Origin: Basidiobolus meristosporus CBS 931.73
Lineage: Eukaryota > Fungi > Basidiobolomycota
Assembly: GCA_002104905.1 (NCBI GenBank)
Contig: MCFE01000759.1
Span: 1 to 38,906, forward strand
Reading direction: 5' to 3'
Length of the DNA: 38,906 nucleotides
Position numbers and translations under genes: made by a program. Positions 1,959 through 30,499 of the stretch are shown here, piece after piece. The notes beneath the pieces were generated by a model. The model did no database searches. It was not told where the DNA came from and worked only from the letters and a program-made list of their open reading frames with translations. Numbering within the stretch: the first letter of the stretch is position 1; the number at the start of each line of letters is the position of its first letter.

Positions 1959-2029
1959 TGCGCCGTCCGGGAATCGAACCCGGGGCTAAAGCTTGGGAAG
2001 CTTCAATTCTACCACTGTACTAACGGCGC
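1959..2029 (-). tRNA. tRNA-Gly(CCC), copy 3 (intact)
   Basis: Identical to copy 1 (reverse complement); T-runs downstream; LTR starts 9 bp upstream. Confidence 0.96.
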
Positions 2030-2038
2030 CTCTATAAT

Positions 2039-2366
2039 TGTTACAGAGTAAAGAGTCACTCGATGTTAAGTGACATCAACGCATACAAAGACGACTTAGT
2101 AGCCAGGGAAAAGCAAATCAAAGACAAATCACCAGACTCACAACAAGGTATAAATACCAAACAAGTAACTAAATAAAAAGGGAGTTTTTGGTTATAGGCA
2201 GAAGAGCGTAGTAGGAACAAATATTAGTTTGAATATATTTCTACAAAGTCACCACCCTAACCTTTTTAAGAGATATTCTTACACTACCCTGTCAAATCTA
2301 CAAGATAACATATAGGTTATCCCTTTTTGTACTCTCTAAAGGACATTACTCTTTAAGTACGTAACA
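2039..2366 (+). mobile_element. LTR, family A (TG...CA), 9 bp upstream of tRNA copy 3
   Basis: TGTTAC...GTAACA termini, TATAAATA and AATAAA; homologs at 2372, 3013, 9782, 18039 and 30215. Confidence 0.9.
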
Positions 2367-2371
2367 GAATT

Positions 2372-2689
2372 TGTTAGTAGGGAGTCAGTTGATGTTAAGT
2401 GACATCAATGCATATAAAGACAACTTAGTAGCCAGGGAAAAGCAAAACCAGACAACTCACCAGACTCACAATAAGGTATAAATACCCATCAAACAATCAA
2501 ATAAAGGGGAAGTTTGGTTAGAAGTAGGTAGAGTGGTAGAAACAAATATTACTTGGAATTTATTTCTACAAGTCACCATCCTATCCTTTTAATAGATATT
2601 CTTACTCTACCCTGTCAAATCTACAAGATAACATACACATTATCCGTTTTTGTACTCTCTAAAGGACATTACTCTTCAAGTACATAACA
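2372..2689 (+). mobile_element. Second family-A LTR in tandem, followed by a putative PBS (TGGGGCTCACAGC at 2694)
   Basis: Homologous to 2039-2366; GAATT on both sides (2367-2371, 2690-2694); gag fragment follows. Confidence 0.88.
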
Positions 2690-2756
2690 GAATTGGGGCT
2701 CACAGCAGGGGTAGTATTAAACAAAAGTAATCTACCTCTCACAAGAAGAACGGGAG

Positions 2757-3012
2757 ATGATCACGCTACAATGGGAACAAAGATTGGCCATGATTAGCAA
2801 TTTCTCCAGATACCAGACCAAGGATCCTTTTGCTTGGCTACGGGAATGTGAAGTTGGTCAAAAGGCAAATCAATGGGATCTAGTAGAACTTCCAATGATG
2901 GCAGGTGCTTATATGAAGGATCTGGCAGCTACTTGGTATGAAGAAAACAAAGGACTTTTGACAGATTGGGAAACCTTTCAGCAAAGATTTAAAGAAAAAT
3001 ACATCACAATGG
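2757..3012 (+). pseudogene. Truncated Ty3/gypsy gag N-terminus
   Basis: DPFAWLRECE...ANQW...TWYEEN...WETFQQRFKEKY aligns with the gag at 25964-26728; cut off by a reverse LTR. Confidence 0.8.
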
Positions 3013-3249
3013 TAAGAATATCTCTTAAAAGATTAGGATGGTGACTTGTAGAAATATATTCAAAGTAATATTTGTTTCTACCGCTCTTCCTACCTCTGAC
3101 CAAGCTTCCCCTTTATTTGATTGTTTGATTGGTATTTATACCTTATTGTGAGTCTGGTGATTTGTCTTGTTTGGCTTTCCCCTGGCTACTAAGTTGTCTT
3201 TGTATGTGTTGATGTCACTTAACATCAAGTAACCCCTTACACTGTAACC
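3013..3249 (-). mobile_element. Partial family-A LTR, reverse orientation
   Basis: Reverse-complement match to most of 2372-2689. Confidence 0.82.
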
Positions 3250-3830
3250 ACATTGAATAAATATAAGCAAGAAAAAGTTGCTAATTTCATTTATTGAGTC
3301 AGGTACAAGAATAATATCAGAGGTAATATAATGAATATATTTGTTGCTCATATCAACCCAACCTCATGAGAAGTCATTCTGGGAAGTAAAAATGATCTTT
3401 GGATTAGGCTGGAGTGATTGCTGTAAATTTTGGGGTTTTCCTAAGCATATTTTACATGTGCTTTTTGCCAAGGCCTAGCAAAGGGGCTTTTGGACAGTTA
3501 ATCAAGTTCTCATTCTGGGCACCTGGCATTTTGGTGAAAAAATATTCATAACAGCAACAATGAAACACAGCTTTGCAATCCCAGTACAATACTGTGAGAG
3601 CTAGGGCCCTGCAGTCAATGCACCTATTTCTTGATTTCTTTTCAATGGCATCTTAGATGTAAATTGAGACCAAAGACCAACTGGTAATATATGGCCATGA
3701 ATAAACACCAGTCTGTTTTGCAACAATAGTTGCTAATAGGTAATGAAGGATTTGTATTCATTTCAACATATTGCAATATTGTTCAAACCAGATGGTGGCT
3801 TAATCAGGTATTATTTGAACAGAGAGTAGG
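3250..3830 (-). pseudogene. Highly degraded retroelement remnants (LTR-I-like piece ~3440-3550; possible RT fragment)
   Basis: 3485-3545 resembles the reverse complement of 11060-11115; minus-strand KKSRNRCIDCRAL resembles the RT motif KKDGxxRxCIDYRAL. Confidence 0.4.
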
Positions 3831-4097
3831 GTAAAAGCAACATCCTTGGTGGGCACTCCGCAAAGCAATGCTGTACACCCAGAAGCGTATTGTTTCCACC
3901 AAAACGCAGCATTTGGAGAAACTGTAGAATCACCAATGGATCAAAGCCTAGCTGCGTGATCTCAGAGTTGACCTGTTTGTCCTCGAAGTGTACCAACTTC
4001 ATTTTTCTTGAGAATTATACGTAGCTCCTTCAAAATTTGGAATGATTTGGTAGTGCAACGGCTTTAGGAGTGCCCATGAGGATTGGAAAAGATCGTA

Positions 4098-4168
4098 TCC
4101 GCCGTCTGGGAATCGAATCCGGGGCCAAAGCTTGGGAAGCTTCAATTGTACCATTGTACTAATGGCGC
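4098..4168 (-). pseudogene. tRNA-Gly(CCC) pseudogene, copy 4
   Basis: 7 substitutions versus copy 1, including C72G, which breaks the first acceptor pair; anticodon arm intact. Confidence 0.85.
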
Positions 4169-4178
4169 CACTAATTAA

Positions 4179-4473
4179 TGTTATGAATCTAAAACTTTGA
4201 CAAGAAGGAAATTGCAGAGTCGGAGAGATACTTGTAAACTGATCAAGAACCTATAAAAGTTGATGTGTTGTTGTAAGTACTAGGGTGGGTTTATATAGGT
4301 ATGTCCCTGGGTAATAGTTTCCGTTGGTGTTGGGCAAACTTCCAAAAGTACCCAAAATGTACTAAGTACATGTAATACCTGAAAATGTCTTTGAAGTTGA
4401 TCTGATATATATTGGTCTTTGGTACTTGTTTGCCCGCTAACGTCTGTTTTGGAATAAAGTGTAATTCACAACA
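4179..4473. mobile_element. Solo LTR (family H), 10 bp upstream of tRNA copy 4
   Basis: TGTTAT...CAACA termini with a perfect 5-bp TSD ATTAA (4174-4178, 4474-4478). Confidence 0.85.
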
Positions 4474-4824
4474 ATTAAAGCTTCTTTCATCTATTACAAT
4501 ATGAGCCCTGAAATCCGGTTAGCGTTACTCAGAATGTTTAGTAATCACAATTGTTCGCACTTTCTCTAGCTTACATCGATGGTAAATATACTTAGGGGTT
4601 AAGACAGACCAGGGAACGGTGGTTCAAATTTGACACCAGTTCCCTTAAAGAAACACTGGACCTCTCTTATGGCTTATTTCCCGAACCCTCTACTTGAATA
4701 AAACCATTCTTAGTACCCACTATCAATATCTACTTGCGCTGGGAACCACAACACATCCTCATCTGTGATTGTGTACTTGCACAAATGAACACCCATTCTC
4801 CCCTTCTCTTATCTCGTGTGATTG

Positions 4825-5164
4825 GCTATTTACTCTGATTGTAGTCGTGTTGTATTTGTTGTAGGTCAAGTTATTGCGCTCCTCCCCATCAACAGACACG
4901 AAGGCCTAGTTTGTGAGAGTACCGCACCCAACTCGATCCTTGAATCTTCAATTTATATACGGCCTAGTGCTTAATCGACGACTTCCTACACGGAACCATC
5001 CTCACATAGGTGCTTTTAGATAAATTGTGAATAAAATGCGTTGTAAGGAGTGGTTGGGATGGATGGGGCCAACATATACTCCATGCGAAATCTCATCACA
5101 TGTGGGATCATCCATGATTTGGGAGACGGGATTTTTGTGGGCTTCACCCAAATATATCGATGGA
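4825..5164. repeat. Unclassified 340-bp direct repeat, copy 2
   Basis: Matches 1193-1532; abuts the broken RNase H of the neighbouring element. Confidence 0.9.
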
Positions 5165-7600
5165 GCTCTCCTTGGTGATCTTGAAAAAGTACTGCCCCAA
5201 CTGCTACATCTGATGCATCCGTTTCCACCGTAAATGGTTTGTTTAGACATGGAGGTTTTAGGACGGAGGCACTGGTGAGGGCTTCCTTCAGTTGACTGAA
5301 TGCCGTTTGACATAATGCTCATTACACCGGTCTTTTCTTTGGGTCCAACCCTCTAATAAAGTTGGACAATGGTGCAGATATGCCTGCAAAACCTCTTATG
5401 AACTTGCGATAGTAAGATGCCCACCCTAGGAACTGTCAAGCTTGTACATTACTTGTGGTTGGCCACTCTCTAATGACTTGTACTTGGTAAGGTCTAGTTT
5501 GATCCCTTCAGCTGACACTATACGGCCGACAAATTTTAGGGAGGTCTTCCCAAACCCATATTTCTTCTTTTTTGTATACAGACGGTTTCTCTTCAAGATT
5601 TCCAGGATTTGTCTGACATGACCTTTGTGACTTGCCTGGTCTGGGCAACAAATTAAAATATCATTTAGGTATACAATTACATATGAGTCTAGATATGAGT
5701 TCAACACCCGGTTCACCATTGCCTGGAAAACTGGGGGAGCATTTACCAATCCAAGAGGCAGCGCCTCGGATTCAAGATTGCTGTATCTGGTGTTAAACGC
5801 GGTTTTGGGAATATTGTCAGATGCAATGCGTATCTGATGATAACTACTCTTGAGATCAATTTTGGAGTTGTATTGGACTGTGTCCAACTAGTTCAAACAT
5901 TCGTCTAGTTAGGGTAATGAACACCAATTCCTTATCGTCACAATATTTAAGGCTCGGTAATCAATGCGCATTTGCGTTTTTCCATCCTTCTTCCTGATGA
6001 ATGATACTGGCGCACCCCATGGAGAGGTACTTGGATGTATCAACTGCTTCTGTAAGAGTTCCTTTGGCTGACGTTTTAATTCTTGCGGTTCCAGTGGGCT
6101 CATTATGTATGGTGAATAACTAATGGATTGAGCCTCCCCTGTCTCTATAACATTTGTAACCTCACATTCTGGTGGTGTGGGAAGGACGCAGAACACCCAG
6201 TTATCATCATAGGTGTTAATTTCCAATGTGACTTTAGCCACTTGGTTGGTTAATTCAATTTGGGCATTAGCCATTTTCACTTAGAACTGGTCAGTTGTTT
6301 CTAATAGAATATCATCGAACTTCAAAAACTTTCGATCAATGTAGCTGATACTGGCTCCGCTATCAATCAGAATTCTGGCTGGTCTTGCTGCCACCGAAGC
6401 CTTGATGAGTCTCAACCAGTGTGGGTTCACATGCAGGTGCTCCGTTGTCCTTTTGATCCTAGCAGGATTGCTACTGCTTAACTTTGGTGTGTGATAAGGT
6501 ATAGCTGTCACTGTTGCTATGGCATTATCATTTGGATTGTCTGTTGTGCTTGGGTCCTACTTACTTTCTTTGAGGGCCTCGTACATCTCGTTCATAACTA
6601 GTGGAGAATTATGCATCATATCTTCCGCTCTAGGGCAGTCTAGGGTTTTGCTTGGTCTCATTCTATCAGCTCTAAGGGGTTCTAATAGTTGGAGTTCGAG
6701 GGGTTCATAGGTTCTTGGTAGTCGTAGTCCGCCAAGTTTATAGGGCTTGCTACATCTTCACTGTTTGTCTTCAATATATTTCTATGGGCCATAGGGTCAC
6801 TGGGGGCATAATCATCAACAATTCTTTCCTCTCGGGGTCCTGGATATATTTCCCTCTTCTGTTTTTTTGGGCGCAGTCATAACTAGGCCATCTATGACTG
6901 CCACCTTCTGCTTTTTTTGTTTCTTGGAACATTCTCTTGAGATGTGTCCTGGCTGGCGATGCCGGAAGCATAGGCATTTACTTCTACATTCTTCACATAA
7001 ATCTTTGCTTAGCTTGGGTAGGTTTAATTGCGCTGCCTGCAAATCTACCTCCATAGGATCAAGCTGATCATACAGGCTGGATGGTGCTATGAACACTTGA
7101 GGTAGCGTGATGATTCTGTTTGTCTTTGATTGAAAGAGCATCTGATCAACTGTTTCTACCATTTGAACGGCCTCTTCAAATGTCAAGGGATCTCGCAGCT
7201 TGACTTATACTTTGGCGCGTGGTTTCAGTCCACATACAACTCGGTCAAGCTTTTCATCCTCCGTTATTGGTGTAATCTGTAGAATGATGTTCCTGAATTC
7301 TGTGCCATATGCAGCAACTGACGTTGTTCGTTGCGTGGTAGTTAATTTATCCCAAGCCAGTTGTAAGTAATTTGATGGCTTGAATTCTGCACATTACTTT
7401 GTTTTGAAACGCTCCCAACCCTTCTGATGGCCTATTGGTTGTTCACATTTCCATTATATGGCTGCATCATCCCGTATAAGTGATATAGCATAATTGACCT
7501 TCTGTACGAGTGTTGATTGCATAGTTTCACCGTAATGGTCTACCACAAATAACCACGCTTAATTGGACTTTGAAAGGTCTTGATGGATTGGTTTTTGTCA
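5165..7600 (-). pseudogene. Degenerate Ty3/gypsy gag-PR-RT-RNaseH, no LTRs found
   Basis: Gag (KPSNYLQLAWDKL, DPLTFEEAV, CCHC knuckle), protease LIDSGAS, RT (IDYRALN, KIDLKSSYHQ, YLND), RNase [14 protein letters not shown]; stops and frameshifts. Confidence 0.9.
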
Positions 7601-7693
7601 AATACTCTTGTATAAGGTTCTGGGTGTTGAGCAACTGTTGTACAATATCATTCTTGCTCATTGTATTATATGGTTCTCTGGCAGTCGCTGTGC

Positions 7694-8195
7694 AGTTGAA
7701 ACTTCTTGTGATCTTCCCTTTGTATTAGCACTTTGGTTCCTACTTCTGGTTCTTGGTCATCTACGTTTTTGTCATATCTTAACTTCATTTGTTGACCTTG
7801 GTCTTTATGCCGTTTTAAAAACCTACTCCCGCTTGTGACCTAACTTCCATTTCTCGTATCCTCCATTCTACTTTATCATCATCGTCTTCAGGATTCCACA
7901 GATTTGGTTGTGTTGTGGCACCTGGAATCTTTGGCTCTTGTCTTTATACCACATAGAATGGTGAATACGCAACAAGTCACATGGGCTTGTATTCTGCATG
8001 CGAAGAGTACCTGCTGAACAAAATCATTTCACTTGTGGTGTATACCTTGAACATAGGTTGCTAGCATTCGGTAAAGCAGCCCGTTAAAACGTTCATTCAC
8101 CCCATTTTTTCTAGGATGAATAGCTGAAGTCTTAAATGTTTGATTCCTTGTAGTTTAACGTAGCTTCCCATTACCCCTTCAATGAAGTTTTGCCA
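7694..8195 (-). pseudogene. Integrase core fragment, inverted relative to its own downstream part
   Basis: Minus strand reads QNFIEG...GVNERFNGL...EDHKKFQL; it joins in frame to WMGP at 8200 (+) through a GCAC microhomology. Confidence 0.7.
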
Positions 8196-8626
8196 GCACT
8201 GGATGGGTCCATTCGTTATAAGTAAAAAAATACCGTTCTCAATGTGTCAGATCGTACATACAAGTGGCGAGATGCAAAGAACGTTAATCTACTGAGACAG
8301 ACTAAAAATAGCTTTACAAGATGGGCCATTCCCGAAAAAAGGGGTTGATACTGTAAAGACAAAGATTCTTCCTGAGAAAAATCAGTTGAAGAAGGGGAGA
8401 ATGTTGTAATAGTTTGAAAGCTGTCCTGAACGAACTGAAGATCTGGGCATATACAGAGGCGTCAGCACCAAATAACACCTAAGTATATGCAAATAGATGG
8501 CCAGATATGAAACAAAACTGTTTGCATGTATTCGGAAAATGTGTTAAATAGCTGATCGCAGGCCAAAATAAAGGCAGACTTGGTTACACCAAACAAAGGA
8601 ACAGGAATAACCCGGATCGCATAGCA
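8196..8626 (+). mobile_element. 3' end of a Ty3/gypsy element: integrase C-terminus, PPT and 3' LTR (8402-8626)
   Basis: HWMGPF...DRLKIALQDGPFPKK; PPT GAAGAAGGGGAGAA; LTR is the reverse complement of 9355-9555. Confidence 0.82.
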
Positions 8627-9555
8627 TTTTCATCTCTCTTCTGTTTTGGACACTCGTAATTTGGTCGTATCTTTCTGCAATCATGTAGGTCTCCTTAGAT
8701 GAGCTAGGATTTTGAAGCTCTACCTCTCTTCTAGTTGCCTTCATAAGTCCACGTGTGTACCGATCAAGTATCTCATCTTCAGCAATTCCCTCAATATCCA
8801 ATAGAATACTCTTGAATTGGTTAGCGAAATTATTAATTGTTTCCTTCTGAACTAGCCGTACAAGTTTGTCTCTGGCACGCTTAGTTGCTGTTACGAGCTT
8901 GAATTCGGTCCTCAATTTTTGTTTGAACCAATTCCACTGATCAACTTCAACTTCATAACCTTCTTGGACTCTCTTCAAGTGAGACCTCCATGATAACAAC
9001 GCTTGTCCCCTGAACAGACTTGATGCGTAATCCACCATTTGTGACTTACTAACGTTTGTAAATTTCAGGTGCTTTTCAACTTGGAAAATCCAAGAATCCA
9101 CATTTGATTTTCCTTCAAACGTGTCAGGCTTTACTAACTTTGCGTGATCGGACCCCATACTTCCATATGCCTTCCAGATATCTTCTGTTGTAGGCAAGTT
9201 CTCTTGCGCACCATATTGCGCCTTTAGCCACTGGTTTCCTTCATTTAATTCTTGCTATTGCTCGCGTAGCAATGCATTGATGTCTTTTCCAGAGCTACAT
9301 CCTTTGGTACTCTTGCTATTGGGAGAACCGCCTTTTGTGTTGCTGCTATCCAAGTGTTATGAACTCCGGGTTGTTCCTATTCCTTTGTTTGATGTAATCA
9401 AGTCTGCCTTTATTTGGCCTGCGATCAACTATTTAACACATTGTTTCATATCTGGCCGTCTATTTGCATATACTTGAGTGTTATTTGGTGCTGGCGCCTC
9501 TGTATATGCCTAGACCTTTAGTTCGCTCAGGTCAGGTTTCAAGCTATTATTACTT
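8627..9555 (-). mobile_element. 5' part of a Ty3/gypsy element (5' LTR ~9355-9555, degenerate PBS, gag), truncated by the opposite-strand relative
   Basis: ORF 8544-9197 (KLVKPDTFEGKSNVDSWIFQVEK...) is homologous to the gags at 12396-13301 and 15905-17692. Confidence 0.85.
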
Positions 9556-9559
9556 GTAA

Positions 9560-9779
9560 TGTTACGCTCGTAGAGGGAAATCCCGGCTAAACAGTAAATC
9601 TCTTGGGATTCCGGTGAGAGTAAGAGTTGATCCAGGATGCAAGGGAGAAGATACTTTATTCGTGTACAAGTCTATCTGTAATAGTTATTCATGGTGTGCT
9701 TTATATGCAGTGTGCTAAATTAAGTTTTAGTGATAAATTAGTAATGGATAGGGTTTCTGGTATACTTTACCCTGTAACA
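9560..9779 (-). mobile_element. Solo LTR, family B (internally deleted)
   Basis: TGTTACGCTCGTAGAGGG...CCCTGTAACA, homologous to 26763-27090. Confidence 0.88.
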
Positions 9780-9781
9780 AG

Positions 9782-10105
9782 TGTTACGTGCTTAAAGAGT
9801 AATGTCCTTTAGAGAGTACAAAAATGGACAACGTGTATGTTATCTTGTAGATTCAACGGGGTAGTGTAAGAATATCTCTTAAAAGGTTAGGGTGGTGACT
9901 TGGTAGAAATGTATTCAAGCTAATATTTGTTTCTACCGCTCTTCCTGCTTCTAACCAAACTTCTCTCTTTATTTGATTGTTTGATTTGTATTTATACCTT
10001 ATTGTGAGTCTGGTGATTTGTCCTGTTTTGCTTTTCCCTGGCTACTAAGTTGTCTTTGTATGCATTGGTGTCACTTAACATCAAGTGACTTCTTACACTG
10101 TAACA
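9782..10105 (-). mobile_element. Solo LTR, family A
   Basis: Reverse complement of the 2372-2689 type; TG...CA. Confidence 0.88.
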
Positions 10106-10108
10106 AGT

Positions 10109-10433
10109 TGTCATGCTCATAGAGGAAAATCCCAGTTAAGCAGTGTATCTTTTGGGTTTCTGGAGAGGGTAGAGTTGATCCAGGTTGGAAGGAAGAAGAT
10201 ACTTTATTTGTGTACAAACCTGTCTGCAATTGTTATTCATGGTGTGCCTTTTAGACTGTGTGTGCTAATTAGGTTTCAGTGATAAATTAGTGATAAATTG
10301 ATGCTAGATAGGGTTTTGGTCAGAGTAACTCTATTTGGGTGCAGATTGGCATGATTGCCTTATATCCATACAGATGGTTGTCTTTTGCAGGGGGCCTACC
10401 ACTTATCCTAGTGGTATATTTTACCCTGTAACA
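10109..10433 (-). mobile_element. Solo LTR, family B
   Basis: Full-length homolog of 26763-27090 with many CG to TG/CA changes. Confidence 0.88.
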
Positions 10434-10436
10434 AGA

Positions 10437-13400
10437 TGTTATGATATTCAGGTCTGGTTCTCCCACTTTGCTGGTGTAACAAGACCTGTCTTTATTTTTA
10501 CCACAGGATCTGCTTTTAACACAATTCCCAATTGCTTGCATAGACTATTGTCTCAAGTTTGCCCAACAGTGAGCATATAATGAAGCATTATCACATGGTG
10601 ACATAACTATATATGTTGTGATCATCTGAATGTTTGGGTTGGGTTTCAGACTGATAACATTTTCCCCTTCTTCAGTTGATTCTTCTCCTAAAGGATCTTC
10701 AGCTTTAAAATACCAAATTTTCTTTTCAGGAAATGGTCCCCCTTGAAGGGCTACTTGGTGGACCAACATTATCTGTATTTGCTCATCAAGGTCTACTAGC
10801 TGATATGTTGAAGACAGCATAACTCTTCTAATTGTGAATGGTCCCATCCAGTATGGTTGAAACTTCTTGTGGTCTTCCTTACGCATTAAGACTCTTGTTC
10901 CTATCTCAAATTCTTGACTGCTTGCATTCTTGTCATTGTTGTAAAAATTTGTAATTCCACCTAAATACTCACCTAACTTAGTCACTTAGATCATTACCTT
11001 CAAATCCTAGAGAATACTGACCAAATTCCTTGTTGGGATTTACTTCAAATATTTTCACCAAAATATCAGGTACCCAGAATATGAGAATTAGAAAAGTTGT
11101 CCAAACAGCCCCAAACTTTGCACAGATGTTCTTGAGACCTTCCTAACCCTATTTTACATGTTTGTTATGCCAAGACCATGTAAAAGTATAAATACTACTT
11201 TTACATTCAATAAATCATCAAGTGAAAACCACATAATCTACTTGTTCTCCCAATCACTTCCAATATCTCCAAGACTCTTACAACAGTCATAACATAAGAT
11301 CATTTGCTGGCCTTGGTTTTCAAGTTGCTTTAACACTTCTTCCCTCTTATGATCTAGACTTTCCAATTCTCTAATCTGTCATTCTGTTTCATCATTTTCA
11401 TCATTGAGGTCCCAAAGATCTGGATGCAATGTGTCACCAGGTATCATGGGTTCCCTCCCATAGACAAGATAAAAGGGCAAGTATCCTGTAGCTATGCAAG
11501 ACTGTATTTGACATGCAAATAGTGCTTGCTGTACAAAATCATCCCATTTATGTTGTGCCCCCTGAACATAAATTGTCAACATTTGGCTAAAGAGCCCATT
11601 GAAGTGTTCATTGACCCCATTTGTTCTGGGGTGAAAGGCGGATGTTTTTAAATGTTTGATCCCCTGTAATTCTATGTAGTTCTTCATGATACCCTCAATG
11701 AAGTGTTGTCCTCTATCTGTGAGAATTTCCTCAGTGCATCCAAACTGTAAAGTGTTATCTTATACAGGAAATTGCTACTTCTTTTGCGGTAGCTTTTCTT
11801 ATTGATTTGGCAATTGGCCACTTTGTTGTGTGGTCAATTGCCATTATTATCCCCTTGTTACCTCTCCTAGTGTTGGCAAGTCTTCCAATGAAGTCTAAAC
11901 TCCATCTACTAAATGCTGGGACTTGGGGTAACAATGTAGCAATGCAGCCTGCTGCTTCCTGCTTTTTATTAACTGACAGTTAGGGTAGAATTGTATGGCC
12001 AGTGCAATACTTTCTGCCATATTTGGCCACAGGTTAGCATATACAGACAATACAGAATTTCTTGGTCTTGATATTTTCTGCACAATACTTCTTCATTAGC
12101 TTGGAACTTATCAAGTTCTTATAATACTAACTCATTGACTTCCATAGTTGTTCCTTCAGGGAAGGTCTGATTGCAACAGTACTCCACCTACTGCCCAAGA
12201 TGAGGCATTTGTTGTCAAATAAAAGATTCTTGTGAAATCAGTACTTTTCAATACTGGTGTGTTCAATAAAGCTTGCTTCAACCCTTGGGATGCTACTTTA
12301 CAGTTTGCTTCTGGAATTATTTTTGCCACTACATCATCACTGAATGTAGGTGTACTCCATGAGACATAAGTTTTCTTTTTAGCTAAGACAGTGTTTTAAG
12401 CTGCTAATTTGACATCTTGGCTCTTTGTTGGTTGGATTAATAACTTGAGTTTCTTTACCAATACTTCAGAGATGTAATTATCACTTAATCCAATGTCTAA
12501 AATAACTTTCACTGGTTGACTACTAATTTCCACCAGCCACTGAATTACCGGCTTTATTGGTTCTTCTATTTGCCAATTAAGCTCTTCCACCATGTGTAAG
12601 ATATGTTGTTCTTTTATTGTATTCAACATTTCTTCAGAGTCTTCTACTTCCACTTTGAACAGCTTATCCTTCTTACACTTAGAACATTCATCAAATTGAT
12701 GGCCTTCTTTTTTGCAACACAGATTGTGTTTCATGCAATATTCTTTGGTTTTTTGATCCAAGATACTGTCAATATCCAACAGCAGATTTTTGAAGTGGTT
12801 AGTAGAACTACTAACTGTTCCTTTTTGGACTAACTTAGCAAGTTTATATCTGGCTTGCTTTGTAGCTGTTATTGGTTTAAACTCTGTTACTGATTCTTGT
12901 TTGAATTCCCTCCATGTCTCAATTTCATCTTCATGACCTTCATTAGACCTTCTTAAATACAATCTCCACCACAATAATGCTCTTTGGAGCGGACTTGAAG
13001 CGTATTCAACTTTCTGAGACTGACCAACATTTGTGAACTTCATATACTTCTCAACTTGAAATATCCAAGTGTCCACATTTGATTTTCCTTCATAAGTTTC
13101 AGGCTTTGCCAACTTTACCCAATTAGATTCCGGACTTCCATATGCCTTCAAAATATCTTCTTTTGTAAGCAAATCTTCTTGTGCACTATATTGTGCCTTC
13201 AGCCACTGGTTCTCTTCCTTTAATTCTTGTAATTGCTCTCTTAACAATGCACTTAAGTCTTCACCAGGGCTACTACCTTCAGTACTCTTACTAGTACTCA
13301 TCTTCTCTTCTTTTTCCAGAGGATTTACAATGAATTGTTGCTACCAGATGTTATGATATTCAGGTCCGGTTCTCCTACTTTGCTGGTGTAACAAGGTCTG

Positions 13401-13525
13401 TTTTTATTTTTAGCGCTGGATCTGCTTTTAACACAATTCCCAATTGCTTGCATAGAATATTGTGACATAACTACTTATGTCATGATCATCTGAATGTACT
13501 GTTTGGGTTTCAGACTATTGTAACA
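10437..13525 (-). mobile_element. Internally deleted Ty3/gypsy element (family C): gag, partial PR, RT deleted, RNase H and IN remnants; 11 bp upstream of tRNA copy 5
   Basis: LTRs 10437-10659 and 13349-13525 (the latter with a deletion); PBS TGGTAGCAAC; PPT next to 10660; gag ORF 12396-13301; IN ORFs 11379-11687 and 10545-10935. Confidence 0.88.
10937..11285 (+). mobile_element. Solo LTR (family I) nested in the family-C integrase
   Basis: TGTTGT...ACAACA with 5-bp TSD GTCAT; removing it restores the in-frame QMILCYDKNAS; TATAAATA and AATAAA inside. Confidence 0.85.
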
Positions 13526-13536
13526 AAAATGTAGAG

Positions 13537-14244: not shown

Positions 14245-14255
14245 CTCTGTATTTG

Positions 14256-19132: not shown

Positions 19133-19149
19133 TGGCACCCAACGTGGGG
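19133..19149 (+). other. Primer-binding site, tRNA-Lys(CUU) type
   Basis: TGGCACCCAACGTGGGG versus the canonical Lys1,2 PBS TGGCGCCCAACGTGGGG (one CG to CA change). Confidence 0.85.
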
Positions 19150-19202
19150 GGTTTGACTGAACTGCCCCTAGAAGACTTAAGAAAGAACAAATTATCAAGA
19201 CC

Positions 19203-21059: not shown

Positions 21060-21988
21060 GAGAGCACTTTGTTCTCCAAACTTACAGTGGTTAGCTAAAA
21101 AGTTCCCTGAAACTTTTTAGCTCAAGTGGGGGGTGGATGTGGTAGGGTAAACATACCTCCCACAGACAAGTTTATTCATATAGTCATTATGATATACTTA
21201 TCCATATTTTATCTTATCAGTATTATCCCATTCTTCTTTTGCCCATATTATCAGTATTATCCTCATATGATGTTTACCCTGATTAGTTATTAGCATTAGT
21301 TATCCCAGATGTTATTCAGCTTTGTGATCAGTAGATGTATCTATATAAGGCAAGTACCCGCGTCAGTACCCGTGACACATGACCTAGGTCTGTGTTACCA
21401 TCTCTACCATTTCAATACCATATATGGTATTTCTATGTTGCACAGGTTTCAGACTACTGATTCCTGATTGGTTGAGAGTGCTGTGCCTTTTAGAACCTTC
21501 CAGGACATTCTTGGCATATTTTTAGCTCATAGTGATGTCATCAAGAATTCCACTGATACCTAGAATCTTCTAGAACCTTGTCATTAGTAATCACTTGGCA
21601 ATCAGGAAAAGTATTTAAGGGAAAGCAATCCCTCATCAATAAATCATCCCTTCTATCAGTAACACTTCTACCTTATTGATTAGCAGTTGATCACTGCACC
21701 TGCCTTCCACAGTGCATCTCAGACCTGCCATCAAGGAGCTTTTCAAGGTAGTGCACAAGACACACAGAGGCCTTTGGAGACACTTGGAGCACCTAGGAAG
21801 CTAGAGAAGCAGGAGCTTTTACCATAGTGACATATTGACAAAGACACCAGCAGTTTAGACACAGAGGTTATTGCACCCATCAGACACCTCACAAACCTTG
21901 AGTTGTGTAGCTTCTCCCAGGAGTACCTCTACACCACCACAGCGTTGATGTCACTTAACATTGAGTGACTCTTTACTATGTAACAAGT

Positions 21989-24900
21989 TGTTACGCTTGT
22001 AGAGGGAAATCCTGGTTAAGCAGTATATCTCTTGGGATTCCGGAGAGGGTAGAGTTGATCCAGGTTGCAAGGAAGAAGATACTTTATTTGTGTACAAGTC
22101 TGTCTGCAATTGTTATTCATAGTGTGCTTTTTATACTGTGTGTGCTAAATTAGGTTTCAGTGATAAATTGGTGATAAATTGGTGCTAGATAGGGTTTTGG
22201 TTCGAGTAACTCTATTTGGGTGTAGATTGGCGTGATTGCCCTTATATCTGTACAGATGATTGTCTTTTGGCGGAGTACCTACCACTTATCCTACAGGTAT
22301 ACTTTTCCCTGTAACAAATGGTGGGCTCCAGGAGATTGACTCCTGTCAATTGTGGACTTACTCATGCCATGTGCGTGCTGAGTTACCAGATTCATTAACC
22401 TCTGGGACTAGTATCCGGATGTCATGTGCTGGGCATAGATGATCAATGTTTGCAATGTAGGTTGTCCCTTCCCAACCAATTTGTTTGATCATGTATGCAT
22501 CATTTGGAAGGCAGTGTTTTATCTTCCATGGGCCATTCCAACGGCATGCAAACTTGTGGGGTCATTGATTTGGTACTATAAAGCGTAAGACTTGATCTCC
22601 TACCTTGAATGTGAATTTTATTGCAACCTTGCATTGCAACTGGCTCCTTTGGTCACCACTTTGTTGTGCTCTATATGCCGCTTCTTGTCTTGCTGTAGCT
22701 AGCAAGTGGTCAATAGCCTGCATTCTTTGCTGTAGGTCTGTTTCCCAGTCTTGTCCCGGGGTTGCTACCCAGTTTGCTGGTGTGTTTAACTCATAGCCAT
22801 ACAATAGGTAGCTTGGTGTGCAACCTGTTTCTTCATTCTTCATTGTATGGCAAATGAACAATGCTTTCTGCAAGTGCTTGTCCCATTCCTGTGAGTGGTT
22901 GCCAATTTTTCCTATTATTTTCTTCAGGTTTTGATTTAAGCGTTCTACCTGTCCATTGCTTTGTGGTTGATATGGTGTGCTGTGACATTCCCAAATGTTT
23001 AGTGTGGTAAGCACAGCTTTGAAAGCATTGTTCACAAAATGGCTGCCGTTATCACTGAACACCTGCTTTGGACATCCATATAGTGGCACAATCTTGTTTA
23101 GAAAGAAGTCAACTACCACTGCTGCATTTGCATCTTGGCAAGCTTGGCCATTGGCCATCTGGTGGCATAATCTATACCTGTGAGAATATAGCAATTTTCT
23201 CTGCCGGTTTGTTCTAGAGGCCCCACAAAGTCTAGTCCCAGGATATCAAATGGGTTTGTAGCCATCACTATGGGTTTTACTGGGATTGCCTTGGCTGGTT
23301 GGTTTTGGACTTGTTGACATTCCCCACAGTTGGCCACCGCCCATCGGACTATCTCATATAGCTGTGGAGCTGAGTACCTTTTGCGTACTATTTCCCATGT
23401 ATGTTCCACTCCAAAGTGCTGTTGTTTGTGTATTTCTTGCACCTCTACCTTGCCTTGGCCTTGAGGTAAAACTTCTTGACCTGGGTGTTTTCTCAAGAAT
23501 AGCCAGTTCTCTTGGTATATGAACTTCCTGGCGTATTTCCTGATCCTTCTTTGGATTTCTGCAGTGTGACCTTTGGGTATATTCCCTTTGCCAAGTATTG
23601 TAGTGTAGCATAGTAATATTCCAGTGATAAACCTTGAATATTTCTAATCGGCGTTCTTGCGCTGTCTTGTCCTGGCCCTCTATTATCAGTATTCTTGAAA
23701 GTGCATCGGAGGGGTTTTGTTTGCCTTGTCAATATTGGATACTGAAATCATAATCCATCAAGTACATTGACCACCTAGCAATCCGGCCCACTAGGTTGGG
23801 CTGATTGAAGATCAATATAAGGGCTTGGTGGTCAGTAAAAAGGTAAAATGGTGTCCATATAGATAGTGTTGGAAATGTTTTATGGCCCATACTACCGCTA
23901 GTCCTTCAAGGCATGTACTAGAGTAATTTTGTTCCGCTCCTTGTAATTGCTTGCTAGCATAATATATAACCTGTTCCTTCCGTCCAATGATTTCTGCAAT
24001 AGGATTGCCCCTAGTCCTTGTTTTGAGGCGTCAGTTGTGAGAATGAAAGGTGTCTTGAAGTCTGGATAGGCCAAAAATGATGCATGAGTTATCTTGTCCT
24101 TCAGGGTGTCAATGCTTCTTGCTGGCTAATGTCCCAGACAAAAGATTTTGTTTTCTTAATCATAGATGTCTGTGGGTACGCAATTGCAGCAAACTGCTTA
24201 ATGTACTTCCTGTAATACCCACAGAATTAACAAAGGATAGGATTTTGTCTTTTCCTCTAGGGGGATGCATGTTCCTAATTGCTGTCACTTTTGCTTCATC
24301 TACCTCAATTCCCTCTTTTGAAATCACATGTCCCAAATACTTCAGCTGTTTCTTTGCAAAGGAACATTTTTTGATTGCAATTTGATTCCTGAGCTCTGTA
24401 GTTTGCTCAGGCTATCCAAAGGTCTTTCAGATGTTGCTCTAATGTTGGGGAGAATACTAGAACATTGTCAATAAATATCAGCACCAATTTCCATAACTCC
24501 TCCCAAAATATTGTGTTCATGGCCATTGGAAGGTAGCCGGGGCATTCATGAGCCAACGGCATGACTTTGTACTCAAAGTACCCTATTTGGTTATGAAAGC
24601 AGTTTTCTCAATTGATGACGGTTCCATCTTGATCTGCCAGTAGCTGGAAGTTCCATCCAATGTGCTGAAATATTGGGCATCTTGGAGGGTATCCAGGAGC
24701 TCATGCACATAGGGAAGTGGGTAAGCATCTTGTTTTGTGATTGAGTTGAGATGTTGGTGATCAACACAGAATTGCTTTGACCCATCTTTTTGTTTACAAT
24801 CATTACTGGAGAGGTCCAAGCAAATATGATGGCTGGATTACTTGCTGACTCAGCATGGCTTCTAATTCTGTCCGTATAATTTTGTTTTCTTTAGGGGAGA

Positions 24901-27090
24901 CACGGTAATAGTTGGATCGTATAGGTCCTTTGCTCCCTGTATCAATGGTGTAGGTGATTCCTTTTATCTGCCCTAGACGCTTCTGTTCTGATGAGAATAC
25001 ATCTGTATATAGAGCCAAAAGGCTATCCAACCCTTCTGGCTGTACTTCCCTTGAACCTTCACTGGACTCAATGGCCAGTGTAGTGGGGTCCAATGTTAAG
25101 AGTGCCACCCTAAGATCCCCATCTTTGTGGTCAAAGAGTTTGTGTGATACATGTATGTTTGTTGTTAGCCGTCCATTGAGGGTGGGGACGGATAACTCAT
25201 TATTGTCAAAGTCTAACCATAGCTTGTGATAGCATATCCAATCCATTCCCAAAATCAGCGGATATGTGTCCTCCTTAGTAATCATTGCTTTGGCTACCAG
25301 GTTATACCGGCATATATTAACTGGCAGTGAAGATATCATTCCTTGTGTTGCTATGGGCTGTCCCCCAAAAGCAATTACTTGCACTGTGGTACCACTTTCT
25401 GGCTTCAATCCCAGTTGTCCTGATAGTTTTTGGGATATCACACTACACATGGCACCAGTGTCTATAATAGCCTCTAAGGTACATCCATTGACTTCAACAT
25501 TGGCTCTAGCATATGTGTAGCCATTCTGTTTACTGCTCTTTGATAAGGTCTGGATTGTTGGGTCTGCAGATTTGCTTGCTTTGGCTACCATGGTAGGGCT
25601 ATTTGCCCAATGAGAGAGCTCCCAGCATAGTTTTGGAGAGTATTGTAACAGATCAGATATTGACAGGCTGATTACTTGCCAACCTATCTTCTCCACAAGG
25701 GGGTTTGAATTATTGTTTTCAGGCACTTCCTCATGGTCAGTCATGTTCCCCATACCCCTGGCTTGCTTCTTTTGCCCCCTCTGGGAGGGGTCTGGCCATT
25801 CCCGTTTTTCAGCAAGGTTTACTGGAATCCCTTCTGGTGATAATGTTTCCTTGCTGTACTCTAGTACATTAATTTTTGGTGGAGTCAGCTCCACAGGTGA
25901 TGGACTTGGAAGCTGAGAAAGGGGAGTCCGGCAAAATTGGGCAATATGCCCTGGTTGGTTGCATCAATAACAGGTACAGGGTGTGGTGCTTCCCAAGGGT
26001 CTTCCACTGTCCTCCTGGGTTTTCTGCAATCGGTCCAAGACATTCATGCACAGTTTCTCAAACTGAGTGGTTAAAGTGTCCATTGGATTGTCAGGGCATT
26101 TGGGTGTGGCAGTTTCCTCCCTTTCCTTATTCTTGTTAAGGCTTCCCTGGATTACTTCATCTTGGAGTACACTGTCATTCTCTGAACCCAATTGTTCCTC
26201 CTCTTCTGCATAGTCTATAACTTCATCTAGTGTAGCTGGTTTTTGTCGTTTTACATCTCTTCGGATAGATGGTTGCAGGGATTCCACCAATATCCATATT
26301 TTCTCCTTCTCAGTCATATCTCCAATGCGGGTTATCAAACGGCACACTTGGGTAGTGATAGCTGCTACTGTCTCATCCTTTCTTTGTCGTATTTGGTACA
26401 ATTCATGTTTCCAAATGTCCCTCCGATCTTCCGTCACAAATTTTTCATTGAATCGCTGCTTGAACTGTTCCCACAAAGTGAAACCTGTCCGGTGACGATC
26501 ATACCATAGGGCAGCATTGTCCTTGAGAAAAGGAGCCACAATCCGAGGAAGTGCTGCTTCTGGCCATTCATTAGCCAGTTGGCACATCTCCACCTCTCGA
26601 ATCCAATCTACTGGATCTTCTGAGGGTTGGCCATGAAACTTTCCGATGGTCACCAGTCGCCGTTCATAGGTGCGGGATTCACTCATATCACTCTGAAATG
26701 AGATTTGTACCCAGCTGTGCTTCTCCAATAGTCAATCTTCTCCCTGGTATGCTCGCCAAAGTTGTTACGCTCGTAGAGGGAAATCCCGGTTAAGCAGTAT
26801 ATCTCTTGGGATTCCGGAGAGGGTAGAGTTGAACCAGGTTGCAAGGAAGAAGATACTTTATTTGTGTACAAGTCTGTCTGCAATCGTTATTCATAGTGTG
26901 CTTTTTATACTGTGTGTGCTAAATTAGGTTTCAGTGATAAATTGGTGATAAATTGGTGCTAGATAGGGTTTTGGTCCGAGTAACTCTATTTGGGTGTAGA
27001 TCGGCGTGATTGCCCTTATATCCGTACAGATGGTTGTCTTTTGGCGGAGTACCGACCACTTATCCTACAGGTATACTTTTCCCTGTAACA
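21989..27090 (-). mobile_element. Full-length but degenerate Ty3/gypsy element (family B), 10 bp upstream of tRNA copy 7
   Basis: 328-bp LTRs at 21989-22316 and 26763-27090 (9 differences); PBS TGGCGAGCATACCAGGGA; gag 25964-26728, PR IDTGA, RT, RNase H, IN HHCC and DDE pieces; many frameshifts. Confidence 0.93.
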
Positions 27091-27100
27091 AAATATAGAT

Positions 27101-27171
27101 GCGCCGTTAGTACAGTGGTAGAATTGAAGCTTCCCAAGCTTTAGCCCCGGGTTCGATTCCCGGACGGCGCA
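27101..27171 (+). tRNA. tRNA-Gly(CCC), copy 7 (intact)
   Basis: Identical to copy 1. Confidence 0.96.
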
Positions 27172-27737
27172 ATGATCTTTTGCTCCCGTTTACGGGCACT
27201 CCGAAAATGAATACCGTACAACCAAGAGTATATCATGTCCATCAAAACACAACATTTGGAGAAACTGTAAAATCACCAGTGGATCAAAGCCTAGTTGGGT
27301 GATCTCAGCATTGACCCGTTTGTGCTCAAAATACACCAACTTCATTTTTCTTGTCAATTACATAGCTCCTTCAAGATTCGGAATGATTTCTGCTATTATT
27401 GTGGGTTTCCGCAATGTTTCCTAGTTTTAGGGCTCTGATGGAACTTGTGCTCAGTTGATCCTTAAGTTTACCGGAATACCAAGGCCACTCCGCTCTTTAA
27501 CTTACTACTCTATTACTAACATACACATTTCGACCTATTATTTCAATTGGTCCAGTGTGTTTTCGGAAGATTGATGATTCATAAATTTAAATCTCTTCAC
27601 TTTGATGGTACGGAAAACCGGCGTTGAAATGGTACAAGTGCATGGATTCCCTTCTACTGGAAATTCTAAAGTTGCTCCAAAATTTGGGAGGTAGTGTGAC
27701 GGTTTGAGGAATGCCATTGATTAAATGAAAAAGGTGA
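27172..27737. repeat. 566-bp spacer between convergent tRNAs; reverse complement of 13608-14173
   Basis: Direct visual alignment. Confidence 0.9.
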
Positions 27738-27808
27738 TGCGCCGTCCGGGAATCGAACCCGGGGCTAAAGCTTGGGAAGCTTCAATTCTACCACTGTACT
27801 AACGGCGC
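27738..27808 (-). tRNA. tRNA-Gly(CCC), copy 8 (intact)
   Basis: Identical to copy 1 (reverse complement); TTTTT downstream. Confidence 0.96.
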
Positions 27809-27819
27809 CTATGTATTTG

Positions 27820-30212
27820 TGTTGCAAAATTGTTTATTGACGTCAAGTTAGGTGTTCCAAAATTTTCAAGAGTCAAGAGGGTTGTTCTGGGTTTCTGGGC
27901 ATCTGTCCTAACGGTACCTTGAGTTGGTTAATAAATACTGTGTTACTTGGCTGAGGCTTGATCCTAATCTGGCTTGCATGCTAAGCCCTTAATGGGCGAT
28001 ATTGTAACATACCCCCAATCTTGAGAGGATTCTACTTCGTAAGAATCATCCGCAGGATACCAGAACTTGGAGGGCAACGGTTGGTTCTGGTCTAAGCGCG
28101 CTATCTTGAGTTGTTCCTGGTGAACAAGGTCTTTCTTAACTGCTCCTTGTGGAGAGGCCAGCTGAAAAGTATGAAAGGGTCGAGCCTCTTTGATGATGTA
28201 AGGTCCTGTCCAAAGTGGGTCGAATTTCTTGCGCTTGTTGTTCTTTAGTAGTACCCATATTCCTGCTTTGAGTTGTGCATTGTTGACTTTTTCTTCTTGT
28301 CGTTTCTTCATGTTTGTTGCTTGATTTACAAGGTTTCTTGTGGCGTCGAACCTTGCGTGTCCCAATGCATCCAGTTCGCGTCTTCGAAATTCCTCGTAAT
28401 CTTCGTTATTGTCTAGCTTCCATAGGTTGGGTGGTAACGAGTCTCCCGGGATCTTTGGCTCTACTCCGTAGACTAAGTAGAAGGGCGACTTGCCTGTGGC
28501 ATAGTGATTTCGAATTCTGCAGGCAAATAGAGCTTGGTGGATGAACTCGTCCCATTTGTGCGTGGCGCCTTGCACGTATGTGGTTAGTATTTTTCCAAAT
28601 AAGCCGTTAAAACGCTCGTTAGCTCCATTGGTTCTAGGGTGGTATGCGGATGTCTTGAGATGCTTAACTTTCATTTTTTCCAGATAGGAGTTCAGTACTC
28701 TGTCCATGAAATTTGTCCCTCGGTCTGTCAATATTTCTACGGGGCACCCAAATTGCATGAAGATTTCGGTGTAAATAAAGTTGGCTACGGTTGTTGCATA
28801 GGCATTGGGGAGAGCCTTTGCAATACACCATTTGGTGGTGTGTTCGATTGCCGTAAGGATCCATCTGTTTCCTCTTTGTGTTGTGGGTAATTCACCAATA
28901 AAATCGAGGCTCCAACGCGTAAAAGCTGGGACGGGGTTGAGAGGATGTAACGGTGTTACAACTTTGTTCGACGGTTTGGCGAGTTGGCATTGCTGACATG
29001 TTTGAATCGCTTGTGCAATGTCTTTTCGCATTTGTGGCCACCAAGCTCGTCGTTTGATAATGTCATAAGTTCCCTGTGAGCCTAGGTGGCCAAATCCGTT
29101 GTGCATCTTATTGATAGTATCGGCTCGAAATACATGCGGAAGGTATGGTACGGGACCGATGTTTTCTAGATGTCGATACAGTACTTCATCTTCTCCAAAC
29201 GAGAACTTGTGGGCTTTGCTTTTTAGGATATCTTGTATCTCCGTAGGTAGGTCAGCTGGGATGGTACCGGACGACAGGTATTCTGGTAGGTAACTGGGCC
29301 AATCGTGCCGTTGGTCAAGGGTGTTAATAGGTTGCAGGTTGTGGTGTCGTGATAAGGCATCTGCTGTTGTCATGGCTTCAATGAGGGTTTTGGGGTCCCG
29401 GTATTCTACTTCGTGTCGCGTCTGAGGTCGGAGTCCTTGGAGGTAGTATTCTTTCTGCTCGGCGTCTGGCATGTCGGGAATTTCGAGCATTAGCAGACTG
29501 AATTGTTGGTTGTATTCTGTTACTGATTTTGTTTGGTTTAATTTGTACAACTTGTCACGGGCGTTCCGTACGGAGTTGACAGGTATGAATTGTTTACGTA
29601 AGGCCGTGGTGAATTCGTCCCAGGTATTGATACTTGGGAGTATTCTACGACTAATTCCTTGGTTTTGGAGTTTCCACCATAGTGTTGCTTCTTTTCGAAA
29701 AAAGGAGGTTGCGTACTGAATTTTGAATAAGTCAGGGTCATTTGAAAAGGCCAGATATTGCTCCATCTCAAAGATCCAAGTTTCGAGTGTCATGGCTTGC
29801 TTTGTTCCATCAAAAGTGTTTGGTTTTGCTAATTTCAAGGTGTTTCCTACAACTGGTCTGTTCACTGGTTGTGTACTAGATGTAGATAGTCGGAATAATT
29901 GTTTTTCCATCTGATCAATGTATGCTTCCATATCTTCGACCGATTCAAATTTGGGGCGGGACATGTCTGTTGTGCTAATTTCAAGGCTTGGGAGGTGTCA
30001 AGAAGGTAATGTTTGTCGCTGCTACCAGTATGTTACGGAATTGTTTATTGAGGTCAAGTCAGGTGTTCCGGGATTCTCAAGAGTCAAGAGGGTTGTTCTG
30101 GGCCCCTGTCCTAACGGTACCTTGAGTTGGTTAATAAATACTGTGTTACTTGGCTGAGGCTTGATCCTAATCTGGCTTGCATGCTAAGCCCTTAATGGGC
30201 GATATTGTAACA
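27820..30212 (-). mobile_element. 2.4-kb RT-less Gag-integrase LTR element (family G), 11 bp upstream of tRNA copy 8
   Basis: LTRs at 27820-28009 and 30031-30212; PBS TGGTAGCAGCG (30017-30027, initiator-Met type); weak PPT; flanks TTTG/ATTG. Confidence 0.92.
27964..29964 (-). CDS. 666-aa Gag-integrase fusion
   Basis: Open ORF: retrotransposon gag aa 1-~200, ADALSR at aa 201-206, HHCC (HNGFGH...CQQC), DDE (SLDF, LTDRG, NERFN), WTGPY; no PR, RT or RNase H motifs. Confidence 0.9.
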   Translation of the reverse strand: MSRPKFESVEDMEAYIDQMEKQLFRLSTSSTQPVNRPVVGNTLKLAKPNTFDGTKQAMTLETWIFEMEQYLAFSNDPDLFKIQYATSFFRKEATLWWKLQNQGISRRILPSINTWDEFTTALRKQFIPVNSVRNARDKLYKLNQTKSVTEYNQQFSLLMLEIPDMPDAEQKEYYLQGLRPQTRHEVEYRDPKTLIEAMTTADALSRHHNLQPINTLDQRHDWPSYLPEYLSSGTIPADLPTEIQDILKSKAHKFSFGEDEVLYRHLENIGPVPYLPHVFRADTINKMHNGFGHLGSQGTYDIIKRRAWWPQMRKDIAQAIQTCQQCQLAKPSNKVVTPLHPLNPVPAFTRWSLDFIGELPTTQRGNRWILTAIEHTTKWCIAKALPNAYATTVANFIYTEIFMQFGCPVEILTDRGTNFMDRVLNSYLEKMKVKHLKTSAYHPRTNGANERFNGLFGKILTTYVQGATHKWDEFIHQALFACRIRNHYATGKSPFYLVYGVEPKIPGDSLPPNLWKLDNNEDYEEFRRRELDALGHARFDATRNLVNQATNMKKRQEEKVNNAQLKAGIWVLLKNNKRKKFDPLWTGPYIIKEARPFHTFQLASPQGAVKKDLVHQEQLKIARLDQNQPLPSKFWYPADDSYEVESSQDWGYVTISPIKGLACKPD

Positions 30213-30214
30213 AT

Positions 30215-30496: not shown

Positions 30497-30499
30497 ATA

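Follow-up and report, generated by a model that had tools for sequence, protein, structure and literature searches.

Ty3/gypsy-type retrotransposons stacked a few base pairs upstream of tRNA-Gly genes in Basidiobolus meristosporus

Why should the ends of several different long terminal repeat (LTR) retrotransposons lie at almost the same distance in front of a tRNA gene? The question is raised by contig MCFE01000759.1 of the early-diverging fungus Basidiobolus meristosporus CBS 931.73 (assembly GCA_002104905.1), the entire 38,906 bp of which formed the window of this analysis. Copies of a tRNA-Gly(CCC) gene are found there with LTR termini immediately upstream of them, and we consider that elements of the Ty3/gypsy type are directed to a set position shortly upstream of these genes transcribed by RNA polymerase III (Pol III), a reading to which we give a probability of about 0.8. 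It is built on the positions of the junctions, the identities of the elements, one pair of filled and empty sites and the target-site duplications, all of which are read directly. The counts of spacing cover this one contig, each gap being the number of base pairs between an LTR end and the mature tRNA 5′ end as read off the sequence, and the contig used for comparison is MCFE01000087.1, called L010 below.

Six copies of the tRNA are faced by five or six types of LTR, in both orientations. The junctions are the following.

2039, start of LTR A#1: gap of 9 bp to the tRNA at 1959-2029 (minus strand), with the leader 2030-2038 = CTCTATAAT
4179, start of the LTR-like sequence H: gap of 10 bp to a decayed tRNA copy
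13525, end of element C: gap of 11 bp (AAAATGTAGAG) to the tRNA at 13537
14256, start of element D: gap of 11 bp to the tRNA at 14174-14244
27090, end of the 5′ LTR of element B: gap of 10 bp (AAATATAGAT) to the tRNA at 27101
27820, start of the 3′ LTR of element G: gap of 11 bp (CTATGTATTTG) to the tRNA at 27738

The insertions thus fit a window of a few base pairs upstream of the tRNA, the gaps being 9, 10, 11, 11, 10 and 11 bp, with a further value of 10 bp for an A LTR in L010. The initial annotation had listed the same six figures, and every one was re-read identically from the sequence; its statement that both orientations are used is borne out at the same junctions. In B, C, D and G the terminus facing the tRNA recurs at the element's own second LTR, beside a stretch resembling a primer binding site (PBS) or a polypurine stretch, and so the tRNA-facing ends of these four elements are natural LTR ends. 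By our own arithmetic (~30 LTR termini, eight tRNAs with three positions each, 38.9 kb) chance would give ~0.02 such junctions, compared with the 5-6 observed. Additional LTRs had been described as abutting behind the first at distances of 2-6 bp, and this is confirmed at three places.

9560-10437: stack B''-AG-A-AGT-B'-AGA-C, the older LTRs lying 2-3 bp apart
18033-18038: spacer of the stack D-AAAATA-A
30213-30214: spacer of the stack G-AT-A

What are the targets? There are seven intact tRNA-Gly(CCC) genes on the contig, for which ARAGORN and Rfam agree, and six of the seven make up three convergent pair units, P0, P1 and P2.

335-405, plus strand: tRNA-Gly(CCC) (ARAGORN, Rfam)
891-961, minus strand: tRNA-Gly(CCC) (ARAGORN, Rfam)
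335-961: pair unit P0, formed by the convergent tRNAs 335-405 (plus) and 891-961 (minus)
1959-2029, minus strand: tRNA-Gly(CCC), a single gene that is not in a pair (ARAGORN, Rfam)
3851-4168, minus strand: tRNA pair unit in a decayed state, its tRNA-Gly pseudogene (~4099-4168) recognized by similarity alone
13537-13607, plus strand: tRNA-Gly(CCC) (ARAGORN, Rfam)
14174-14244, minus strand: tRNA-Gly(CCC) (ARAGORN, Rfam)
13537-14244: pair unit P1, convergent tRNAs with a spacer of 566 bp that is inverted relative to P2
27101-27171, plus strand: tRNA-Gly(CCC) (ARAGORN, Rfam)
27738-27808, minus strand: tRNA-Gly(CCC) (ARAGORN, Rfam)
27101-27808: pair unit P2, formed by the convergent tRNAs 27101-27171 (plus) and 27738-27808 (minus)

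The pseudogene at ~4099-4168 is called by neither ARAGORN nor Rfam. P1 and P2 (13518-14254 and 27091-27827) are 95% identical over 737 nt, with the 566-bp spacer inverted. Each of the two spacers has in L010 the orientation that it has here, and the flip therefore predates the split of the two contigs. A sensitive blastn search of the flanks for LTR character found no recognizable LTR at −10 of the tRNAs at 335 and 891, and the fronts of the P0 genes look like unoccupied or undeterminable sites.

The elements and solitary (solo) LTRs themselves are listed next, with protease abbreviated as PR, reverse transcriptase as RT and open reading frame as ORF.

2039-2366, plus strand: LTR A#1, TGTTACAG...GTAACA, with its U3 end facing the tRNA and followed by GAATT at 2367-2371
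2372-3017, plus strand: LTR A#2 (2372-2689) and a gag remnant, comprising GAAT, TGGGGCTCAC (PBS-like, from 2694) and, at 2772-3017, a fragment of Gag
3012-3248: LTR A#3, partial and inverted, truncating the A#2 unit
4179-4791: H, LTR-like, starting with TGTTATGAA, the same 9 nt as D
9560-9779, minus strand: B'' solo LTR
9782-10105, minus strand: A solo LTR
10109-10433, minus strand: B' solo LTR
10437-13525, minus strand: element C, with Gag at 12396-13301, integrase remnants at 10668-12029 and a 5′ LTR that ends at 13525
14256-18032, minus strand: element D, with LTRs at 14256-14481 and 17807-18032, Gag-PR-RT at 15905-17692 and RNase H at 14972-15673, the integrase core being deleted
18039-18324 and 21942-21985, minus strand: solo LTR A, split by the element X804
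21989-27090, minus strand: element B, 5.1 kb, with LTRs at 21989-22316 and 26763-27090 and with Gag, PR, RT, RNase H and integrase remnants
27820-30212, minus strand: element G, 2.4 kb and non-autonomous, with a single Gag-integrase ORF of 666 aa at 27964-29964
30215-30496, plus strand: older A LTR, pushed outward by G and 9 bp from the tRNA beforehand

From their sequences these are classified as Ty3/gypsy (Metaviridae) LTR retrotransposons. Pfam matches were obtained to Retrotrans_gag/Ty3_capsid, RVP_2, RVT_1, RT_RNaseH, Integrase_H2C2 and rve, according to a tblastn map the domains of B, C and D follow the gypsy-type order along the minus strand, and PBS-like sites starting with TGG lie 2-4 nt past U5. 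The LTR pairs of B, C, D and G end in TGTTA...TAACA (the U5 end of G being GCAACA), and the two LTRs of an element are 97.8% identical in D (226 bp), 97.3% in B (328 bp), 94% in G and ~85% in C. The A family has six copies on the contig. The 666-aa ORF of G is uninterrupted in L010 also, with 98.8% amino-acid identity.

How closely are these families related? The Gag proteins of C and D are 47% identical and those of C/D and G 35%, while the integrase of G is 45% identical to those of C/D. The proteins of B share 23-27% identity with those of C, D and G, the integrases of the two lineages being 27% identical, and 41% identity was measured between the Gag of B and the fragment of Gag that follows LTR A#2. 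This pattern of identities supports a minimum of two deeply diverged lineages, one comprising A and B (A/B) and the other C, D and G (C/D/G). H perhaps belongs with C/D/G, where it is grouped because its first nine bases are those of D; sensitive blastn located no second copy of H in the contig, and its status as an LTR is unconfirmed for that reason. The proposal made at the outset was of six unrelated families sharing a 3-bp window. The shared window stands for several Ty3/gypsy lineages, but neither the description as unrelated nor the number of six families does, in view of the Gag identities, the common TGTTA...TAACA ends and the unconfirmed status of H.

The history of the insertions can be followed by comparison with L010, a contig of 177 kb in the same assembly that carries the same four host genes. 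The ORF at 31489-33279 on the minus strand of our contig is K493DRAFT_211498 of B. meristosporus CBS 931.73 (100% identical, full length). When reverse-complemented, L010 is collinear with positions 12053-38906 of our contig, with an identity of 99.8% in the gene part and 96.4-99.1% in the part occupied by transposable elements (TEs). The TE/tRNA part differs by 1-3.6% between the contigs, mostly by transitions, many of them CpG (30/47 transitions in the P1-D stretch). From these figures the two contigs may be haplotypes, or the products of a recent duplication, in which the repeats are decaying faster.

Element B is absent from L010. There the A LTR runs ...CTCTGTAACA, followed by the leader AAATACAGAG and the tRNA, while at the same site in MCFE01000759.1 we read A-LTR...GTAACA, then AGT (21986-21988), B, the leader AAATATAGAT and the tRNA. 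Since the site in L010 is clean without B, the point of entry of B was precisely where the A LTR met the 10-bp leader, and the A LTR was thereby moved outward by 5.1 kb. Between P1 and P2 the block measures 4.05 kb in L010 and 12.86 kb here. This direct comparison of filled and empty sites in the two contigs supports stacking by repeated insertion at one site.

Target-site duplications extend the record further back. An exact duplication, AAATA, is present for A and another, GCGT, for X804, and G has the near-duplication ATTTG/ATT-G. The flanks of the A solo LTR read D-A[AAATA] on one side and [AAATA]CAGAG-tRNA on the other, a perfect 5-bp duplication over −10 to −6. Because the duplication made by A sits inside the junction of D, 11 bp and tRNA, D lay 11 bp from the tRNA at 27101 before A arrived. 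The order of insertion at this tRNA is therefore D, followed by A and then B, each within 1 bp of the same place. At the tRNA at 27738 the duplicated bases ATTTG/ATT-G of G take in the initial 2 nt of the older A LTR, and the site of G was therefore set by distance from the tRNA and not by the content of the upstream DNA. To cut into the upstream DNA in this manner is what one would expect if a ruler were anchored on the gene or on its transcription complex.

Other differences between the contigs were observed in this region. The internal deletions of D are not the same, the integrase core being gone in the copy of this contig and Gag-PR in that of L010. A stretch of 874 bp (30378-31251), comprising the end of an A LTR and the adjoining DNA, is missing in L010, with no clear duplication or microhomology at the break.

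X804 (18325-21941, plus strand) has a different character. Its LTRs of 804 bp are identical, and it has one ORF of 618 aa with a weak match to DUF4100. It interrupts a solo LTR of A, some 4-5 kb away from the nearest tRNAs, and is missing from L010, where the empty site reveals the 4-bp duplication GCGT. X804 is a non-autonomous LTR element that is not targeted to tRNAs, and it is very recent, since the second contig lacks it. It is the youngest element, and it bears on the suggestion that outward pushing by successive arrivals explains the large blocks between tRNA pairs: in L010, without B, the A LTR abuts the leader, as that suggestion requires, but 3.6 kb of the 13-kb block was contributed by X804.

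How might such a precise choice of site be made? In our reading the junction of the LTR end is made 9-11 bp upstream of the mature tRNA 5′ end, the 5-bp staggered cut extends over about −10 to −6, and the position is dictated from the tRNA side, staying constant whether host DNA or the LTR of another family lies upstream. A newcomer accordingly lands between the tRNA and the previous element and displaces the older one outward, and repeated arrivals build nested stacks and multi-kb TE blocks between the pair units. A/B and C/D/G, hence no fewer than two deep lineages, behave in this way. By analogy with Ty3 of Saccharomyces cerevisiae and Tj1 of Schizosaccharomyces japonicus, the integrase would be tethered to the Pol III pre-initiation machinery (TFIIIB/TFIIIC). 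As the spacing matches that of Tj1, the mechanism that we consider most likely is a tether between the intasome and the pre-initiation complex.

The determinant of tethering would be something other than the vestigial chromodomain of Ty3. An AlphaFold model of the integrase of G (27 homologues, predicted local distance difference test score, pLDDT, of 83) has zinc-finger, catalytic and SH3-like domains. The predicted SH3 strands occupy residues 301-352 and are followed by ~45 residues without predicted fold, with pLDDT <50 from residue 371. A Pfam scan of the 666-aa ORF of G gave no match to Chromo at E ≤ 0.01, and the integrase tails of D (~30 aa) and B (~20 aa) leave no room for a chromodomain. 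That the integrase C-terminus has none, as noted originally, is upheld by the model, which stops at the SH3-like domain and ~45 disordered residues. The model resembles the integrases of foamy virus and Ty3 about equally. A tail motif common to C, D and G, P..WY.P, was considered as a sufficient determinant and rejected, since relatives in Lichtheimia that lie away from tRNAs have the motif too.

Some junctions are irregular. The bases of the spacer between U5 and PBS are kept after the distal U5 at four of them, namely GAAT for A#1 (2367-2371), ACT for B' (10106-10108), TC for C (10434-10436) and ACT for B (21986-21988). The GAAT of A#1 is identical to the bases before the PBS behind A#2, and the AGT beside B is the reverse complement of ACT, the spacer between its U5 end and PBS. 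In all four the spacer is kept solely at the tRNA-distal U5, while D and G have clean U5 ends where they face the tRNA. The proximal end may have been joined by the targeted integrase and the distal, unprocessed complementary DNA end by host end joining. Such non-canonical insertions would have a precise proximal end, an unprocessed distal U5 and no duplication, as would result if integration were one-ended and end joining came after it. Alternatively, A-AGT-B may have arisen once and been spread by conversion. It is a doubtful proposition that everything holds jointly, i.e. that two deep lineages with integrases 27% identical hit the same nucleotide-precise Pol III target free of a chromodomain, either by repeated gain of tethering within Basidiobolus or by an old mode of tethering unlike the ruler of Ty3, and that the insertions of B, B', C and A#1 were completed non-canonically.

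A number of observations weigh against integration directed to genes that Pol III transcribes, and they give the alternatives their footing. All of the targets on the contig are copies of one tRNA-Gly(CCC) with a common leader, and recognition of the Pol III complex and of the leader sequence are inseparable from this contig alone. Simple target duplications of 4-5 bp were sought for B, C and D and were not found; by comparison with the empty site in L010, B added just the 3 nt AGT and made no duplication. The junction A-AGT-B is present twice, with 88% identity over 380 bp, so that certain junctions may be products of duplication or conversion and not of independent events, and the presence or absence of B could in principle be the product of ectopic conversion between the A LTR and tRNA repeats. 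The LTRs of B itself are much younger than the 88% identity of the A-AGT-B duplicate. D is bordered on both sides by 11-bp tRNA-Gly leaders (positions 14245-14255 and 18033-18038, read together with L010) in mirror orientation, with no duplication. Recombination has reshaped the D locus, a deduction from the two leaders and the absence of a target duplication, and D probably arose by recombination between two copies of D that fronted two facing tRNAs.

Could the integrases be reading the DNA of the shared leader, (A/C)AAAT(A/G)(T/C)AGAG, rather than the Pol III machinery? All eight tRNA copies belong to one family, seven have the 10-11-bp leader in common, and the duplication AAATA of A falls within it. 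Yet this would demand that two integrase lineages with 27% identity recognize one short AT-rich motif, and the leaders at occupied sites vary at several positions, so that we think it improbable. That the junctions were copied by segmental duplication, or that a palindromic tRNA pair unit was moved next to existing LTRs, draws on the duplicated and inverted pair units, the double occurrence of A-AGT-B, the two near-identical contigs and the leaders on both sides of D. But the LTRs that touch the tRNAs differ in family, sequence and orientation and end at their natural termini, the empty site of B is clean, and A has its own duplication inside the leader; we regard such an origin as very improbable. 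The descent of all junctions from one duplicated insertion, considered from the start, fares in part likewise: the differing families and orientations of the LTRs at the tRNAs speak for independence, but as A-AGT-B is present twice the independence is not complete. Finally, integration might be random or regional, with purifying selection sparing the harmless copies beside tRNAs. Gene-poor, TE-rich blocks do gather many kinds of insertion, and X804 is found here without tRNA spacing. However, selection cannot yield single-nucleotide precision (a 3-bp window at 5-6 sites, with B exactly at the boundary of A LTR and leader), and sites a few base pairs further upstream would be equally harmless, which leaves this explanation with scarcely any probability. 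Integration directed to a point fixed by the Pol III-transcribed gene accordingly remains our preferred reading.

One further repeat on the contig resembles an LTR pair. This is a direct repeat of 365 bp (1168-1532 and 4800-5164, 95.6% identical), given the name E as a candidate LTR pair and rejected as such. It is host DNA, each copy having an Afu_182-like small RNA gene identified with Rfam just over the gathering score.

1227-1418, minus strand: Afu_182-like small RNA gene
4859-5050, minus strand: Afu_182-like small RNA gene

How general is this habit among related elements? The nearest integrases are only ~50% identical, and come from Mucorales, rotifers and unidentified contigs. No adjacency to tRNAs was found at three Lichtheimia loci, one Absidia locus or the Rotaria loci (one element and place in three assemblies), and tRNA adjacency is thus not a general by-product of the clade or of the method. 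For the integrase of B nothing above ~44% identity, and so no close relative, was found among 1.8 billion representatives. In two contigs of the European Nucleotide Archive (L001 and L002) and one of Parasitella (L003) a tRNA lies within 300 bp of the element; the spacing in L002 is 92 bp, the LTR is undefinable in L001 and L003, and no conclusion is drawn from them. A contig of the Joint Genome Institute metagenome 3300046529 (L005) has over positions 1-11700 a block of gypsy fragments between divergent tRNA-Gly(TCC) genes at 163-233 (minus strand) and 11555-11625 (plus strand), the mutual homology of which ends 10-11 bp upstream. Judged by this arrangement it may be a further case of the same habit in another organism.

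LTR retrotransposons that home in precisely on Pol III genes are a textbook example of safe-haven integration. Among gypsy elements a 2018 review lists such targeting only from ascomycete yeasts and Dictyostelium (PMC5911963), and the trait has so far been met in ascomycete yeasts (Ty3, Tj1 and elements of Candida and Yarrowia) and dictyostelids and tied to compact genomes (PMC5911963, PMC5006619). Our full-text searches of the literature returned no report of tRNA-linked retrotransposons in Basidiobolus or Zoopagomycota. Its occurrence in a zoopagomycete, in several lineages at once, would broaden the known range of the trait. The details most worthy of attention are the comparison of filled and empty sites, the integrase that lacks a chromodomain and the junctions that retain spacer bases. 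If integrases reach the spot used by Ty3 without a chromodomain ruler, the question of how distance is measured becomes testable in a second, independent system, and the near-identical contigs, as natural before-and-after pairs, lend themselves to studies of the way in which insertions are completed. The stacks also explain, for purposes of annotation, why tRNA clusters are embedded in multi-kb TE blocks in B. meristosporus.

The closest known systems differ from the Basidiobolus elements in instructive ways. Ty3 shares with them the order Gag-PR-RT-RNase H-integrase, a 5-bp target duplication (seen here for A) and a window of a few base pairs just upstream of tRNA genes in either orientation, and the modeled integrase fold appears similar (7q5b, template modeling score 0.59). 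The identity of the integrases is ~22%, however, no nearer than that to foamy-virus integrase, and the host of Ty3 is a budding yeast and not a zoopagomycete. Ty3 is positioned by TFIIIB, through the C-terminal domain of its integrase together with a vestigial chromodomain, which contact TBP and Brf1, and this chromodomain follows the SH3 domain and serves as a ruler on Brf1 (PMC8632968); in its place the elements described here have only ~45 (G), ~30 (D) or ~20 (B) tail residues. Tj1, again a Ty3/gypsy element, lands 5-11 bp upstream of the 5′ ends of mature tRNAs (PMC4600332), and the ten gypsy families of its host cluster with tRNA genes in a manner resembling the present stacks. Its insertions have the same orientation as the tRNA only, whereas both orientations are used here, and its targeting was established experimentally, whereas ours is deduced from genomic copies and one filled/empty pair. 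DGLT-A of Dictyostelium discoideum is a third Ty3/gypsy element found upstream of tRNA genes in either orientation, and has been taken as convergent Pol III targeting (PMC5006619, PMC5911963). Its window of 13-33 bp upstream is wider and more distant than that in Basidiobolus, and its host is an amoebozoan with a compact genome.

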